From: Perkinsus chesapeaki ATCC PRA-425
Taxonomy: Eukaryota > Protista > Perkinsozoa
Assembly (NCBI GenBank): GCA_013115145.1
Contig: JAAPAO010000015.1
Location: forward strand, 62,001 to 126,000
Reading direction: 5' to 3'
Length of the DNA: 64,000 nt
Positions 27,309 to 33,611 of the stretch are shown here, piece after piece. Below the pieces are notes generated by a model that saw only the letters and a list, made by a program, of their open reading frames with translations, was not told where the DNA came from and made no database searches. Each line of letters begins with the position of its first letter. Position 1 is the first letter of the stretch. The position numbers were made by a program, and so were the translations under genes.

Positions 27309-30300
27309 ATGTCATCTTCTGCCCCCAATAGAGCCATCGTTGTTGGCGGGGGTCTCGCTGGTTTCACTGCGGCCAACACCATCCTCGAGGCTGGTGGCCG
27401 AGTATTACTTATTGATAAATCTGCGTTCTGTGGAGGCAACTCTTCCAAGGCCACTTCGGGTATCAACGGTGCCGTGACGAAGACACAGAAGGCCTTAAAT
27501 GTTCAGGATTCCAATGAACTTTTTGAATCAGACTGTATGAAGGGTGGCGCCAAGCATCCCGAACTTGTCAAGGTTATGGTTGAGAACTCCGGCTCCTCTG
27601 TAGACTGGTTGATGGACAACTTCGACCTGGACCTATCTCTCCTTGCTCGCCTCGGTGGTCACTCTGTCGAGCGTACTCATCGTGGTAAGGAAAGGTTCCC
27701 TGGTATGACCATCACCTACGCTGAGATCCAAATGGCCGAGGCTATCGCCAAGAAGTTCCCTGATAGGTGCGAGATCTTGAACAAGTGCAGGGCAACCAAG
27801 TTGCTAACTACCCCCAACGGTGACGTCAACGGTGTGCAGTACACAACTAGGAAGGGTGACGTTATCGAGGAGTACGGCCCTGTTATTCTTGCTACTGGTG
27901 GCTTTGGTGCCGATTTCTCGGAATCCGGCATTCTCGCCAAGGTCCGCCCCGATCTACTTAAGCTGTCGACTACTAATGGTGAGCACTGCACTGGTGATGG
28001 CATTAAGATGGGCCAGGCCATCGGTGCTCAGACAGTCGATTTGGACTTCGTCCAGGTTCACCCCACTGGCTTAGTCAACCCCAAGGATCCCGATGCTAAG
28101 GTGAAGTTCCTTGCCGCTGAGGCCCTTAGGGGTGTAGGTGGCATTCTCTTGGATGCGAATGGAAAGAGGTTCGTTAATGAGCTCCATCGTCGTGACTACG
28201 TCTCCAATACTATGTTCAAGAACAAGGCTCCTTTCCGTCTCGTCCTCAACAGCAAGTCCGCTGAAGAGATCCATTGGCATTGTGAGCATTACAAGGGCCG
28301 AGGTGTTATGAAGGAGTTCAAGACTGGTCGTGATTTAGCTAAGGAGATGGGTATCAGCCCTTCTGTGTTGGAGCAGACCTTCAAGGAGTACAACGAGATT
28401 ATGAAGAAGCAAGTCAACGACCCTAACGGTGGTCCTTATGATGCCTACCCCTCTGGCAAGACCTACGATCCTTTCGGCAAGAAGTTCTTCAAGGACTACC
28501 CAATGTCTATCGACGACACCTTCCAGGTCGCCATTGTTACCCCTCTGGTTCACTACACCATGGGTGGTCTGAAGATCAACACTTTCGGTCAAGTCCTTGG
28601 TCCCAAGGACAAGCCTATCAAGGGTCTCTATGCTGCTGGTGAGGTTATGGGAGGCGTCCACGGCAACAACAGGCTTGGTGGTAACTCTTTGCTGGACTGT
28701 GTTGCCTATGGGCGTGTCACTGGTAAGCATCTGGCCTCTAACGTCCTCAAGTTGAAGGCTGATGATGCTGTTCCACTGAAGGACCTTAAGGAGGGTCGCA
28801 CCGCACCTAATGTTCGCGCCATCGTCGTAGGCGGTGGTTTGGCTGGATTCTCCGCGGCTAATACTATCTTGGAGAATGGTGGTAGTGTTATCTTGCTTGA
28901 TAAGTCTGCCTTCTGCGGTGGGAACTCCTCTAAGGCTACTTCTGGTATTAATGGTGCTTGCACCAAGACTCAGAAGGCTCTTGGCGTCAAGGATTCCAAT
29001 GAGCTCTTCTATAATGACTGCATGAAGGGTGGTGCTAAGCATCCTCATCTGGTCAAGGCCATGGTCGACAACTCTGGTGCCTCTGTCAACTGGTTGATGG
29101 ACAACTTTGACTTGGATCTTTCTCTCCTTGCTCGCCTCGGTGGTCACTCTGCTGAGCGTACTCATCGTGGTAAGGAAAGGTTCCCTGGTATGACCATCAC
29201 CTATGCTGAGATCCAAATGGCCGAGGCTATCGCCAAGAAGTTCCCTGATAGATGCCAGATCGTGAATAAGGCCCGTGTCACCGAGTTGCTTACCGACTCT
29301 CAGGGCACTGTTGTTGGCTGCAAATATACCGACAAGAAGGGCCAAGTTCATGAGGAGAAGGGTCCCGTCATCCTCGCCACTGGTGGCTTTGGTGCTGATT
29401 TTTCTCCTGATGGCATTTTGGCCAAGGTCCGTCCTGATCTCTTGAAGTTGGCCACCACCAACGGTGAGCACTGTACCGGTGATGGCATCAAGATGGGCAT
29501 GGCCGTTGGCGCTCAGACTGTCGATCTTGAGTTTGTCCAGGTTCACCCCACTGGGTTGGTCAACCCTAAGGACCCCGATACTAAGGTCAAGTTCTTGGCT
29601 GCGGAGGCACTTCGCGGTGTAGGTGGTATTCTGCTCGATGCTGATGGAAAGAGGTTCGTCAACGAGCTCCACCGTCGTGACTATGTCTCTAACACCATGT
29701 TCAAGAACAAGGGTCCCTTCCGTCTTGTGTTGAACTCTTCTTCATCCGAGGAGATTCACTGGCATTGTGAGCACTATAAGGGTCGCGGTGTCATGAAGGA
29801 GTTTGCTAGTGCTAATGCTCTCGCTCAGGAGATGGGGATCAACCCTTCTGTCCTGGACCAGACCTTCAAGGAGTACAACGCCATCATGAAGAAGCAGATC
29901 GACGATCCGGACAACGGCCCATATGATGCTTATCCAAGCGGCAAGACCCACGATCCCTTCGGCAAGAAGTTCTTCAAGCCCTATCCTATGAAGATGGATG
30001 ACCACTTCAATGTCGCCATTGTCACCCCATTGATCCATTACACCATGGGTGGCCTTAAGATTGATGATCACGGCCGTGTTCTCGCCGAGGGTGATAAGCC
30101 AATCCCGGGTCTCTACGCTGCTGGTGAGCTTATGGGTGGTGTCCATGGCAACAACCGTCTTGGTGGTAACTCCCTGCTAGACTGCGTGGTCTATGGCCGC
30201 CTTACTGGCAAGGACTGCGCTAAGTACATGCTGAAGGGTAAGACTAAGCCTGTCCCTCTGAAGTCTCTGAAGCAGGGCCTCACCAAGGATGTCAAGACGG

Positions 30301-33300
30301 TTATTGTTGTCGGTGGTGGTCTGGCCGGTTTCTCTGCAGCTAACACTGTCTTAGAGAAAGGTGGTCAAGTTCTGTTGCTCGACAAATCTGCCTTCTGCGG
30401 TGGTAACTCGTCTAAGGCTACTTCGGGTATCAATGGCGCCAACACCAAGACTCAGAAGGCTCTCGGTGTGAAGGACTCTAACGAGCTCTTCTACTCCGAT
30501 TGCATGAAGGGTGGTGCTAAGAAGCCCGATCTTGTCAACGCTATGGTTGAGAACTCTGGTACCTCTGTTAACTGGTTGATGGACAACTTCGACTTGGACC
30601 TATCCCTCCTTGCCCGCCTCGGTGGTCACTCTGTTGAGCGTACTCATCGTGGTAAGGAAAGGTTCCCTGGTATGACCATCACCTACGCTGAGATCCAAAT
30701 GGCCGAGGCTATCGCCAAGAACCATCCTGATAAGTGCAAGATAATGAACAAGGCTCGTGTCACCAAGTTGCTTACCGGTGATGATGGCTCTGTTACCGGC
30801 GTTGTTTATGAGACTAAGGATGGCCAGAAGCATGAGGCCTATGGTCCTGTTATTCTCGCTACTGGTGGTTTCGGTGCCGACTTCTCTCCTGATGGTATCC
30901 TGGCTAAGGTTCGCCCTGACTTGCTGGGTCTTTCTACTACCAACGGCGAGCACTGCACTGGTGATGGTATCAAGATGGGAATGGAGGTTGGAGCTGATAC
31001 CCTTGACTTGGAGTTTGTTCAAGTTCATCCTACTGGTTTGGTCAACCCTAAGGACCCCAATTCCAAGGTGAAGTTCCTTGCCGCTGAAGCCCTTAGGGGT
31101 GTAGGTGGTATTCTCTTGGACGCTGATGGAAACCGGTTTGTTAATGAGCTCCATCGTCGTGACTACGTCTCCAACACTATGTTCAAGAACAAGGCTCCCT
31201 TCCGTCTCGTCCTCAACAGCAAGTCCGCTGAAGAGATCCATTGGCATTGTGAGCACTACAAGGGCCGAGGTGTTATGAAGGAGTTTGCTACCGGCGCCGA
31301 CTTGGCTAAGGAGATGGGCATCCCTACTTCGAAGCTCGAGCAGACCTTCAAGACCTATAATGAGGTTATGCAAAAGCAGTTGAAGGATCCTGATGGAGGC
31401 CCGTATGATGCCTATCCCTCTGGCAAGACCTACGATCCGTTTGGCAAGAAGTTCTTCAAGGACTATCCTATGTCTGTCAACGACACCTTCCAGGTCGCCG
31501 TGGTCACTCCTTTGGTTCACTACACCATGGGCGGCTTAACCATTGACACCAAGGGTCGTGTTCTTGACAAGAAGGGTCAGCCTATCAAGGGTCTTTATGC
31601 TGCTGGTGAGGTTATGGGAGGCGTCCACGGCAACAACAGGCTTGGTGGTAACTCTCTACTGGATTGTGTTGTCTATGGCCGCCTTACTGGTGCGGACTGT
31701 GCCAACTACGCCGGTGCTGACGAGCCTGTAAGCCTCAAGCAGCTGAAGAGCACTACCACTGCTGTTGCTGCTCCACCTGCCGCTCCGGCCAAGGCCGCCC
31801 CTAAGCCCGCTCCTGTAGCTGCCCCGGCTCCCGTAGCTGCTCCTTCAGGTCCTGCTCCTATCACCATGGCTGATGTGGCCAAGCACAACACCAAGGACGA
31901 CTGCTGGGTGGTTATCAACGGTGACATCCTCAATGTGACCGACTTCCTTCCCGATCATCCCGGTGGAGATCTCGCTATTATGACTTTCGCTGGTAGAGAT
32001 GCCACGACTGAGTTCAACATGATTCACCCGCCGGATGTGATTGAGAAGTACGCTCCTGATGCTATCATCGGTCAGGTTGGTGTGGCCCCTGCTGGTGGTG
32101 CTCCGGCTGCAGCTGCCCCCGCGGCCGCAGCAGCTCCTGCCGCTGGTGGTGGTATTACTATGGACGAAGTGGCTAAGCACAATACTAAGGATGACTGCTG
32201 GGTTGTTATCAATGGTGATGTTCTTAACGTTACGGAGTTCCTTCCTGACCATCCTGGTGGAGACCTTGCTATTATGACTTTCGCTGGTCGCGACGCCTCC
32301 AACGAGTTCAATATGATCCACCCGCCAGATGTTATTGAGAAGTATGCTCCGGAGGCTGTCATCGGTCAAGTTGGTACTGGTGCCCCTGCCGCAGCCCCGG
32401 CTGCTGGCGCCCCTGCTGCTCCTGTCCCGGCCAATGGTAAGACTATGGAAGAGGTCGCCAAGCACAACAAGAGAGAAGATTGCTGGGTTGTTATTAATGG
32501 CCAGGTCCTCGATGTCACGGAGTTCCTTCCTGATCATCCTGGTGGAGATCTGGCTATCCTGACCTTCGCTGGTCGTGACGCTACCAATGAGTTCAACATG
32601 ATTCATCCGCCGGATGTCATTGAGAAATATGCTCCGGAGGCTGTCATTGGACCTGTTGTGCAAGCCACTGCTCAACCGGCGGCTCCGGCTGCTGCTGGTG
32701 GACTCACTCAACCTCTTCTTGCCGACCCGAGGGTCGCCAAAGAACAATGGTGGGGTGAGGACCGCAACACTGCTGTTATGCATGGACCATTGGGAGAGTC
32801 CGTCTACTCTTATTGTGCTGGTGTTGTCTATTTCGCCTGGTTGCTCATTCTAGAGACATTGAAGACTATCTTTACTGTCAAGAACTACAAGGTTATTCAT
32901 GACAAGTCTGGATTGACTAGATCCGCTATGTTCTTGATTGTTTTCGTGATTATTCACGGCCTTGGTAATCTTCACTGTTTCTTTGGTCCAGATCACTTCA
33001 ATGGTTATGCCTACTTCCTCAACCATCCGTGCCCCTGGAGTACTCTTCTTCTTCCAGTTGAGATCTATCTTCTCGCTGCTGGGCTGCTCCACGTAACGGT
33101 TGGTCTTGTCCGTACCTACAAGTTCAAGACTATCAATACGGCATTCGACCAACTGTGGCTTATTACGACTGGGGTTGTCCTTCTGGTGTTCTTGATCGTG
33201 CACTTGATACAGTTCCGCCTCGTCTCTGAGGCCGCCGCCCCCCAGTATTACTTCCGCGCTAAGTGGATGTATCCCTTCTTCTGCGACAAGGATGACACTT

Positions 33301-33611
33301 CGTGTGCTGTGGTTCACTTCAAGGATCTTTACAAGATGGAATTCCAGATCTTCGAGAGCTTAGGTTGGGTCTGCTTCTATCTTGTTGGTGTTATGTCTTT
33401 CATTCTCCACGTGAAGGAGGGTCTGAGGAAGGTCATTGCTGCTCATCCGGCAGTCCCAAGGAAGTACAAGGGCAGGACAACTACCATTGCCAATCTCGTT
33501 GTGACGTTCATTGGTCTAATCTACTTGTCCTATCCCATCTTCTGCTACTTCGCCCCCGTCAAGAGCTGGAAGAAGTATGATGAAGAGATGATTCAGCCTG
33601 GTACGCCCTAG
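27309..33611 (+). CDS. Multidomain fumarate reductase: 3x FccA/Osm1-type FAD domain + 3x cytochrome b5 + SdhC/cytochrome b558-like membrane anchor
   Basis: Intronless 2100-aa ORF. It has three GGGLAG...QVHPTG...EALRG...RRD...HYTMGG...HGNNRLGGNSL units (about aa 8-480, 503-975, 997-1470) and three KHNxKxDCW...HPGG...IHP b5 units (about aa 1518, 1616, 1711). Five hydrophobic helices carry His1883/1928/1965/2034. Confidence 0.92.
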   Translation: MSSSAPNRAIVVGGGLAGFTAANTILEAGGRVLLIDKSAFCGGNSSKATSGINGAVTKTQKALNVQDSNELFESDCMKGGAKHPELVKVMVENSGSSVDWLMDNFDLDLSLLARLGGHSVERTHRGKERFPGMTITYAEIQMAEAIAKKFPDRCEILNKCRATKLLTTPNGDVNGVQYTTRKGDVIEEYGPVILATGGFGADFSESGILAKVRPDLLKLSTTNGEHCTGDGIKMGQAIGAQTVDLDFVQVHPTGLVNPKDPDAKVKFLAAEALRGVGGILLDANGKRFVNELHRRDYVSNTMFKNKAPFRLVLNSKSAEEIHWHCEHYKGRGVMKEFKTGRDLAKEMGISPSVLEQTFKEYNEIMKKQVNDPNGGPYDAYPSGKTYDPFGKKFFKDYPMSIDDTFQVAIVTPLVHYTMGGLKINTFGQVLGPKDKPIKGLYAAGEVMGGVHGNNRLGGNSLLDCVAYGRVTGKHLASNVLKLKADDAVPLKDLKEGRTAPNVRAIVVGGGLAGFSAANTILENGGSVILLDKSAFCGGNSSKATSGINGACTKTQKALGVKDSNELFYNDCMKGGAKHPHLVKAMVDNSGASVNWLMDNFDLDLSLLARLGGHSAERTHRGKERFPGMTITYAEIQMAEAIAKKFPDRCQIVNKARVTELLTDSQGTVVGCKYTDKKGQVHEEKGPVILATGGFGADFSPDGILAKVRPDLLKLATTNGEHCTGDGIKMGMAVGAQTVDLEFVQVHPTGLVNPKDPDTKVKFLAAEALRGVGGILLDADGKRFVNELHRRDYVSNTMFKNKGPFRLVLNSSSSEEIHWHCEHYKGRGVMKEFASANALAQEMGINPSVLDQTFKEYNAIMKKQIDDPDNGPYDAYPSGKTHDPFGKKFFKPYPMKMDDHFNVAIVTPLIHYTMGGLKIDDHGRVLAEGDKPIPGLYAAGELMGGVHGNNRLGGNSLLDCVVYGRLTGKDCAKYMLKGKTKPVPLKSLKQGLTKDVKTVIVVGGGLAGFSAANTVLEKGGQVLLLDKSAFCGGNSSKATSGINGANTKTQKALGVKDSNELFYSDCMKGGAKKPDLVNAMVENSGTSVNWLMDNFDLDLSLLARLGGHSVERTHRGKERFPGMTITYAEIQMAEAIAKNHPDKCKIMNKARVTKLLTGDDGSVTGVVYETKDGQKHEAYGPVILATGGFGADFSPDGILAKVRPDLLGLSTTNGEHCTGDGIKMGMEVGADTLDLEFVQVHPTGLVNPKDPNSKVKFLAAEALRGVGGILLDADGNRFVNELHRRDYVSNTMFKNKAPFRLVLNSKSAEEIHWHCEHYKGRGVMKEFATGADLAKEMGIPTSKLEQTFKTYNEVMQKQLKDPDGGPYDAYPSGKTYDPFGKKFFKDYPMSVNDTFQVAVVTPLVHYTMGGLTIDTKGRVLDKKGQPIKGLYAAGEVMGGVHGNNRLGGNSLLDCVVYGRLTGADCANYAGADEPVSLKQLKSTTTAVAAPPAAPAKAAPKPAPVAAPAPVAAPSGPAPITMADVAKHNTKDDCWVVINGDILNVTDFLPDHPGGDLAIMTFAGRDATTEFNMIHPPDVIEKYAPDAIIGQVGVAPAGGAPAAAAPAAAAAPAAGGGITMDEVAKHNTKDDCWVVINGDVLNVTEFLPDHPGGDLAIMTFAGRDASNEFNMIHPPDVIEKYAPEAVIGQVGTGAPAAAPAAGAPAAPVPANGKTMEEVAKHNKREDCWVVINGQVLDVTEFLPDHPGGDLAILTFAGRDATNEFNMIHPPDVIEKYAPEAVIGPVVQATAQPAAPAAAGGLTQPLLADPRVAKEQWWGEDRNTAVMHGPLGESVYSYCAGVVYFAWLLILETLKTIFTVKNYKVIHDKSGLTRSAMFLIVFVIIHGLGNLHCFFGPDHFNGYAYFLNHPCPWSTLLLPVEIYLLAAGLLHVTVGLVRTYKFKTINTAFDQLWLITTGVVLLVFLIVHLIQFRLVSEAAAPQYYFRAKWMYPFFCDKDDTSCAVVHFKDLYKMEFQIFESLGWVCFYLVGVMSFILHVKEGLRKVIAAHPAVPRKYKGRTTTIANLVVTFIGLIYLSYPIFCYFAPVKSWKKYDEEMIQPGTP

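Follow-up and report, generated by a model that had tools for sequence, protein, structure and literature searches.

Type-B anchors, which carry two hemes, have been described in bacterial succinate/fumarate enzymes that are linked to menaquinone, where they work with SdhA, of the covalent-FAD (flavin adenine dinucleotide) type, and with the iron-sulfur (Fe-S) subunit SdhB. The solved anchors (9lay_C, 1e7p_C, and 5xmj_C) and the NCBIfam family TIGR02046 (SdhC/FrdC cytochrome b558) have in common a bundle of five transmembrane helices (TM1–TM5), with histidines of TM1 and TM3 paired at the distal heme and those of TM2 and TM4 at the proximal heme, and with basic loops on the proximal side. We know of no eukaryotic redox enzyme with an anchor of this type. 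In Chloroflexus SdhC, the axial ligands are His32 and His135 for the distal heme and His81 and His188 for the proximal heme, and the loop between TM3 and TM4 contributes to the distal menaquinone site (PMC12663545). Here, we describe a single open reading frame (ORF) of 2100 amino acids from Perkinsus chesapeaki ATCC PRA-425, encoded within a 64,000-nucleotide stretch of contig JAAPAO010000015.1 (positions 62,001 to 126,000; hereafter the window), which joins three flavodomains and three cytochrome b5 domains to a C-terminal membrane module of the type-B kind (Table 1). With a probability of roughly 0.6, we read this module as a five-helix diheme bundle preceded by one additional helix (TM0), with the b5 domains and flavodomains lying beside the distal heme and relaying electrons between the membrane hemes and FAD.

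Other described systems resemble parts of this protein. Our search for eukaryotic precedents for a type-B-like anchor yielded only Mcp1 of yeast, which does not act as a redox enzyme; it has a predicted FrdC-like five-helix bundle with four conserved histidines, and was proposed to be a bacterial succinate dehydrogenase anchor acquired by gene transfer (PMC5626531). Mcp1 differs from the Perkinsus protein in residing in the mitochondrial outer membrane, where it recruits Vps13, and in having no redox domains, and its sequence similarity to the Perkinsus module is non-significant. Shewanella flavocytochrome c3 (Fcc3) and yeast Osm1 likewise reduce fumarate with a soluble-type flavodomain, and in Fcc3 a heme domain of the same chain feeds the FAD; however, Fcc3 is a soluble periplasmic protein with c-type hemes, Osm1 has no heme domain, and neither is fused to a membrane cytochrome, whereas the carriers in Perkinsus are three b5 copies on a diheme membrane anchor. 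The mitochondrial complex II of Perkinsus marinus, which belongs to the same genus and acts on the same succinate/fumarate pair, was solved as part of a II2-III2-IV2 supercomplex, in which SDHC and SDHD are truncated, complex II is heme-less, and ubiquinone co-purified (preprint 10.1101/2024.05.25.595893). The diheme module is a separate system: identity with the mitochondrial anchor was rejected on account of that heme-less structure.

The C-terminal ~290 amino acids belong to the type-B (cytochrome b558) SdhC/FrdC superfamily, as a diverged member of eukaryote type, in line with the resemblance to a bacterial type-B SdhC that an earlier, sequence-only reading of this DNA had noticed. The Perkinsus protein matches TIGR02046 (E 5.8e-15) over 193 positions (12–204 of the 212 in the profile), at a score of 55.5 bits that lies below the curated cut-off of 96 bits; all 21 collected relatives match the same family (best E 1.3e-21). 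A profile of these relatives has a single match in the PDB, the SdhC of Chloroflexus aurantiacus (9lay_C; E 6.5e-10). An AlphaFold2 (AF2) model of the module, built on the relatives' alignment (mean predicted local distance difference test score 80, predicted template modelling score 0.77), was compared with 48,161 PDB representatives in a structural scan independent of Foldseek. The top three ranks fall to type-B heme anchors: 9lay_C (Z 18.4; 209 amino acids, root-mean-square deviation [rmsd] 3.4), Desulfovibrio gigas FrdC (5xmj_C; Z 14.2), and Wolinella succinogenes FrdC (1e7p_C; Z 13.8). The next match is cytochrome b561 at Z 8.4, so that the comparison with SdhC, FrdC, and b561 structures proposed in the sequence-only reading comes out on the side of SdhC/FrdC. 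Foldseek and two ESM Atlas searches agree with the type-B anchor fold, and the model contains the five-helix bundle with one extra predicted helix preceding it.

Two other family assignments were tried and rejected. Membership of the cytochrome b561 family is contradicted by an rmsd of 5.9 and a Z-score well under those of the SdhC matches, as well as by the lack of a sequence match. The Pfam family of yeast Mcp1 (MCP1_TM, PF07950) is matched by only two of the 21 relatives, with a best E of 0.48.

The four histidines are shared with the bacterial anchors. Their positions and codons (Table 1) and their spacing (45/37/69) are exactly those given by the sequence-only reading, as are their contexts (F-x2-I-H-x2-G-N, L-L-H, T-G-x2-L-L-x-F-L-I-V-H, and Y-x6-F-x2-H-x3-G). 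In an alignment of 19 family members and 37 bacterial SdhC sequences taken from genomes, on which all conservation counts below are based unless another set is named, H1883, H1928, H1965, and H2034 are invariant (56 of 56 sequences), and they align with the four Chloroflexus axial ligands; their conservation in relatives, on which the heme-ligand proposal had been made to depend, therefore holds. The conserved signature extends well beyond the ligands. The H, G, and N of the TM1 H-x2-G-N motif are invariant in both groups, and the H and G of H-x3-G in TM4 are invariant or nearly so; E1918, at the start of TM2, is found in all 19 family members and in 32 of the 37 bacterial rows. Further residues common to the family and the bacteria include the G-P-D-x-F-N-x-Y motif after TM1, a proline in TM5 (P2076), and G1955, F1961, F1969, F2015, and Y2024. 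The invariant histidines, the wider signature, and the fold together make homology with working bacterial anchors firm, and ligand conservation strongly predicts that the module binds two b hemes. That the similarity is a chance hydrophobic match, or that heme binding has been lost altogether, is very unlikely: although a single-sequence PDB search with the module is weak (E 0.11) and a Pfam scan of it returns no significant match, both the profile and the structural comparison single out type-B anchors, and the ligand histidines do not vary. The resemblance to type-B anchors is far beyond chance.

The Perkinsus module differs from the bacterial anchors in TM0, in a 20–25-residue insertion with a Cys pair in the TM3–TM4 loop, in the replacement of the bacterial N-terminal S-x-G-K-K motif, and in its sub-cut-off hidden Markov model score. 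It differs further in its partners: there is no adjacent sdhA or sdhB, and the anchor is instead fused to b5 domains and to soluble flavodomains of non-covalent-FAD-type sequence.

TM0 was overlooked in the sequence-only reading, which counted five helices and whose interval for the module begins at the very edge of TM0. Hydropathy gives six hydrophobic segments, with TM0 located between the last b5 domain and TM1; it comprises 25 residues with a mean hydrophobicity of 0.55 and a moment of 0.22, and is thus similar to TM1–TM5 and non-amphipathic. TM0 is a confident helix in the AF2 model (model residues 21–46), and is conserved in all 26 sequences of the TM0 type, both stand-alone and fused, whereas its columns are gapped in 35 to 36 of the 37 bacterial SdhC sequences. 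Solved type-B anchors align to the model only from residues 46–49 onward. Six-helix heme proteins (b561, Dcytb, NOX5, STEAP1, and gp91phox) align from residues 28–37, inside TM0, which suggests that the AF2 model packs TM0 as a sixth helix within the membrane. The b561/Dcytb and NOX/STEAP proteins have six helices and two stacked bis-His hemes, and might offer an analogy for a transmembrane conduit; however, the match that spans TM0 is weak (Z 6.5–8.4), they differ in helix connectivity and His pattern and have no sequence match, and the Perkinsus module is clearly SdhC-derived.

Counting TM0 changes the predicted topology. Averaged over the family, the loops TM0–TM1, TM2–TM3, and TM4–TM5 carry 9.0 K/R vs. 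2.2 D/E, whereas the 15 residues ahead of TM0, the TM1–TM2 loop, and the C-tail together carry 2.2 K/R vs. 4.1 D/E; locally, the stretch ahead of TM0 is acidic and the loop behind it basic. In the Perkinsus protein itself, the loops after TM2 (R-T-Y-K-F-K) and TM4 have 2 K/R vs. 1 D/E and 6 K/R vs. 0 D/E, respectively, and are basic as had been stated. Once TM0 is counted, the positive-inside argument places the N-terminal domains on the distal-heme side: the b5 and flavin domains probably share a side with the distal heme and the C-x6-C loop between TM3 and TM4, with the basic loops opposite. The enzyme domains would then probably lie on the side that is periplasmic in bacteria, opposite the docking side of SdhA/SdhB, that is, with inverted sidedness. 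The sequence-only reading had put the flavodomains on the cytosolic side together with the basic loops, and the C-x6-C loop opposite; once TM0 is counted, this placement is not supported, and the domains fall on the C-x6-C side.

The arrangement implied by that earlier reading, in which the bundle keeps its five-helix bacterial orientation, TM0 is peripheral or re-entrant, and the b5 domains dock on the basic-loop (proximal-heme) side of a single-chain quinol:fumarate reductase, in the place of the Fe-S subunit and with the C-x6-C loop across the membrane, is unlikely. It accounts for the five canonical helices and for both basic loops being as they are in the bacterial enzymes, and the C-terminal third of TM0 does contain a conserved Glu and also a Lys. 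It would also satisfy at once the positive-inside rule and the missing signal peptide, since basic loops and N-terminal domains would both be cytosolic. However, TM0 is a 25-residue, confidently predicted helix whose hydrophobicity and moment are like those of TM1–TM5; an acidic stretch precedes it and a basic loop follows; stand-alone and fused forms both conserve it; and six-helix heme proteins superpose from within it.

The Cys pair that had been noted in the TM3–TM4 loop, and the insertion that carries it, are both confirmed. The loop has 44 residues, compared with 24 in the stand-alone relative P0021, and the bacterial rows are gapped over most of its length. In the AF2 model, the insertion forms two strands (model residues 170–175 and 191–196), with C1992 and C1999 in the 15-residue connection between them. 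The pair is kept in 8 of the 19 family rows, all in the Perkinsus-like subgroup, and is absent from the ~400-residue proteins with one b5 domain and an anchor, and from the stand-alone forms. The suggestion that C-x6-C is an electron entry site finds no support in so restricted a distribution; the two cysteines could act as a local staple or bind a metal.

The soluble part of the protein is made up of fumarate-reductase and cytochrome b5 domains. The first flavodomain has yeast Osm1 as its best solved relative (5glg; E 2e-87), with flavocytochrome c3 of Shewanella next. In this copy, which was aligned in detail, the stretches QVHPTG, RRD, HYTMGG, and NRLGG have identical or near-identical residues in Osm1; we take these to be the catalytic His/Arg motifs of Fcc3-type reductases. 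With FAD_binding_2 matches and all four stretches present, the flavodomains are of the soluble Osm1/Fcc3 type, and the ORF contains no Fe-S domain. The three flavodomain units are mutually 81–82% identical as protein and 77–79% as DNA, which indicates an old internal triplication, common to this protein and the Perkinsus olseni orthologue. The relatives P0064 and P0002 have one or two flavodomain units. Both heme histidines (that of HPGG and the second one, in M-I-H-P) are kept in each b5 domain, and the Ala/Pro-rich linkers between these domains are as expected for mobile carriers. The juxtamembrane segment with its W-G-x-x-R motif is found in all b5-fused family members, whereas stand-alone proteins lack it. 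This segment may serve for docking at the distal-heme side, or may cap that side.

An anchor that serves mainly as a membrane tether, with structural heme, while soluble donors (such as NADH-cytochrome b5 reductase or reduced flavin) feed the b5 domains and FAD and the membrane hemes contribute nothing to fumarate reduction, is decidedly unlikely. Yeast Mcp1, for which a structural heme has been argued, offers a precedent, being an FrdC-like bundle with four conserved histidines and a non-respiratory role (PMC5626531), and Osm1, to which the flavodomains are closest among solved proteins, is reported to work without a membrane partner (PMC6242907). The thermodynamic doubt over a ubiquinol donor (see below) also fits a tether. 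Against this, conservation extends beyond the four histidines to the distal-side signature of working bacterial enzymes, including E1918 and G-P-D-x-F-N-x-Y, and the association of the anchor with b5 arrays, whether or not a flavodomain is present, favors an exchange of electrons between the two over a tethering role.

In the mechanism that we favor, namely a six-helix module with its enzyme domains beside the distal heme, the bundle would bind a membrane-spanning stack of two b hemes, the distal one ligated by H1883 and H1965 and the proximal one by H1928 and H2034. By virtue of TM0, the chain would enter the bundle from the side corresponding to the bacterial periplasm, so that both sets of soluble domains, the three b5 copies on their tethers and the three flavodomains of Osm1 type, would adjoin the distal heme and the C-x6-C hairpin. 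The membrane hemes would exchange electrons with the mobile b5 domains, which would replace the absent Fe-S subunit and pass electrons to FAD, and the FAD would reduce fumarate to succinate. The membrane hemes would receive their electrons from a quinol bound at a distal-type site, or else from a far-side donor via the proximal heme. The analysis demonstrates homology, fold, ligand conservation, the extra helix, and the charge asymmetry; we infer heme binding, the membrane topology, the direction of electron flow, and the electron donor.

Several observations weigh against this mechanism. The score for TIGR02046 is below its cut-off, Pfam Sdh_cyt (PF01127) matches the Perkinsus protein only at E 4.6 (7.8 bits) and five of the 21 relatives at a best E of 3e-4, and the two membrane hemes are themselves predicted. 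TM0 is only moderately hydrophobic, besides having the conserved Glu and the Lys mentioned above. The Perkinsus ORF, its P. olseni orthologue (P0001), P0064, and the ~400-residue b5-plus-anchor proteins have no signal or transit peptide, and the N-terminal part is for this reason probably cytosolic; a cytosolic N-terminus would put the basic loops off the cytosol, contrary to the positive-inside rule. No RNA runs are listed as covering the ORF stretch. Going by textbook values, the potential of the ubiquinol couple is too high for it to reduce fumarate. Respiration in P. marinus uses ubiquinone (preprint 10.1101/2024.05.25.595893), and neither rhodoquinone nor menaquinone turned up for Perkinsus in a literature search. 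On these three grounds a quinol donor is doubtful, and room is left for a transmembrane relay or for soluble donors.

A wider proposal, which we put forward as a tentative possibility, is that type-B SdhC plus one helix gave rise to a eukaryote-wide family of six-helix diheme proteins, and that the Perkinsus member is a transmembrane conduit. Electrons from a far-side donor (in the lumen of an organelle or of the endoplasmic reticulum, or outside the cell) would pass from the proximal to the distal heme, and then through b5 to fumarate, within a single chain and without Fe-S clusters. If the conduit were real, it would be a new way in which a eukaryote disposes of electrons across a membrane onto fumarate, independently of oxygen.

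The family was collected by word and profile searches and falls into three layers. The first consists of Perkinsus-like proteins in which the anchor is joined to two to three b5 domains and one to three flavodomains; among these, P0064 has one flavodomain and two b5 domains, and P0023 of P. olseni has two b5 domains and the anchor, the flavodomain being absent. The second layer consists of complete proteins of ~400 residues with one b5 domain and the anchor, on contigs of the JGI/Tara metatranscriptome type. The third comprises stand-alone proteins of ~240 residues, in which TM0 is already present. One of the stand-alone forms comes from the transcriptome of Telonema subtile (EukProt), and another lies on contigs with genes for a C-type lectin, an inward-rectifier channel, an acetyl-CoA transporter, and ankyrin proteins, without sdhA or sdhB. 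The b5–anchor pair recurs without flavodomains (P0009 group and P0023) and with one (P0064), which suggests that it is the conserved core relay and that fumarate reductase is an optional terminal module. The wider six-helix family, stand-alone in Telonema and uncultured eukaryotes and b5-fused in marine metatranscriptomes, appears to be uncharacterised.

Some of the stand-alone forms (P0034, P0039, and P0041, including that of Telonema) have Arg/Ala/Ser-rich N-terminal extensions of 30–60 residues before TM0, which resemble organelle presequences and are not found in the b5-fused forms. Because of these extensions, the ancestral stand-alone form may have been organellar. The start codon of the stand-alone P0021, on a 996-nt Logan contig (L001:1-996) that may be eukaryotic or bacterial, overlaps the stop codon of a short upstream ORF (ATGA), an arrangement that looks bacterial.

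The nearest relatives outside the family are encoded by bacterial sdhCAB genes. In the three bacterial relatives that were inspected, the adjoining ORFs are sdhA-like (636–682 amino acids) and sdhB-like (257–264 amino acids), the order sdhC-A-B being assigned from ORF size and order only. In two quick trees with 37–39 bacterial SdhC sequences, the TM0-type sequences stand apart on a long branch (Shimodaira–Hasegawa approximate likelihood-ratio test [SH-aLRT] 99–100); in the maximum-likelihood tree of 26 TM0-type and 39 bacterial-type sequences, this split has an SH-aLRT of 100, and the b5-fused forms group together as one clade, whose stem is long (SH-aLRT 100). No bacterial sister group or donor emerged from either tree, for which the bacterial sample is biased, having been fetched by two motif patterns. 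The phylogeny of the isolated domain that the sequence-only reading had called for therefore separates the TM0-type sequences from bacterial SdhC and leaves them without a bacterial sister. The accompanying proposal, that a bacterial diheme anchor was captured and fused, is partly supported: the anchor is non-mitochondrial and its nearest relatives are bacterial sdhCAB products, but no donor was found, and the fused forms nest with a stand-alone, six-helix, eukaryote-type family in which TM0 predates the joining of b5. From the sequences alone, capture of the anchor from bacteria is plausible, and the likely order of events is a six-helix stand-alone protein, then fusion to b5, and then the addition of flavodomains.

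The ORF is closest to hypothetical proteins of P. olseni in the databases. The P. olseni orthologue P0001 (2056 amino acids) has the identical layout of three flavodomains, three b5 domains, and the anchor, with 92% identity in the C-terminal module, and the fusion junction is spanned by independent sequences (P0001, P0064, and several b5-plus-anchor contigs). A paralogue in P. marinus, P0068, carries the RefSeq label "succinate dehydrogenase, putative"; the similarity has thus already been seen by automatic annotation. A literature search on the architecture of flavodomains, b5 domains, and a diheme anchor found no published description. The ORF has no N-terminal targeting extension, and the Rossmann motif for FAD begins at about residue 9. 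The 6.3-kb gene (27309-33611) has no intron, and few long ORFs are found elsewhere in the 64-kb window, as would be expected of eukaryotic DNA. The missing intron would be compatible with a retrogene or with acquisition by transfer, or might merely reflect an intron-poor gene that is highly expressed.

Table 1. Features of the 2100-residue Perkinsus chesapeaki protein and its membrane module, with coordinates in the window.
Feature	Position	Strand	Residues	Description
Single ORF	27309..33611	+	2100 in total	Uninterrupted; stop codon 33609-33611; three flavodomains, three cytochrome b5 domains, six-helix membrane module
Three tandem soluble fumarate-reductase flavodomains	27309..31748	+	~1-495, 496-988, 989-1480	Pfam FAD_binding_2 x3, E 1.6e-245
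Three cytochrome b5 domains	31863..32657	+	~1519-1590, 1617-1688, 1712-1783	Pfam Cyt-b5 x3, E 2.2e-75
Juxtamembrane segment	32745..32804	+		W-G-x-x-R motif; between last b5 domain and TM0; conserved in alignments
TM0	32805..32879	+	1833-1857	Extra N-terminal hydrophobic helix, outside the bacterial five-helix anchor; basic loop after it
TM1	32919..32984	+	1871-1892	H1883 (codon 32955) in H-x2-G-N; predicted distal-heme ligand; aligns with Chloroflexus His32
TM2	33045..33113	+	1913-1935	E1918 (codon 33060); H1928 (codon 33090), predicted proximal-heme ligand; aligns with Chloroflexus His81
TM3	33150..33221	+	1948-1971	H1965 (codon 33201); second predicted distal-heme ligand; aligns with Chloroflexus His135
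TM3-TM4 loop with insertion	33222..33353	+	1972-2015	Predicted beta-hairpin; C1992 (33282), C1999 (33303)
TM4	33354..33422	+	2016-2038	H2034 (codon 33408) in H-x3-G; second predicted proximal-heme ligand; aligns with Chloroflexus His188
TM4-TM5 loop, TM5, and short C-tail	33423..33608	+	Loop 2039-2058; TM5 2059-2083	Conserved Y2072 and P2076

A single chain that connects such an anchor to b5 carriers and to fumarate reductases of the soluble type, and that has no Fe-S subunit, is an unusual architecture. If active, the protein would represent a new arrangement for disposing of electrons on fumarate, in a parasite that must survive hypoxia in shellfish tissue.

Three other regions of the window, all on the minus strand, have recognizable matches. 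Just downstream of the large gene, the ORF at 35306-36067 matches eukaryotic dimethylarginine dimethylaminohydrolase over the full length (DDAH_eukar, E 1.8e-75). At 52831-54981, two adjacent ORFs of ~290 residues each resemble the PI-PLC X domain weakly (E 2e-4 to 6e-4) and may be tandem paralogues. The ORF at 56593-57393 matches domains I and II of phosphoglucomutase/phosphomannomutase, and is probably one exon of a larger gene.

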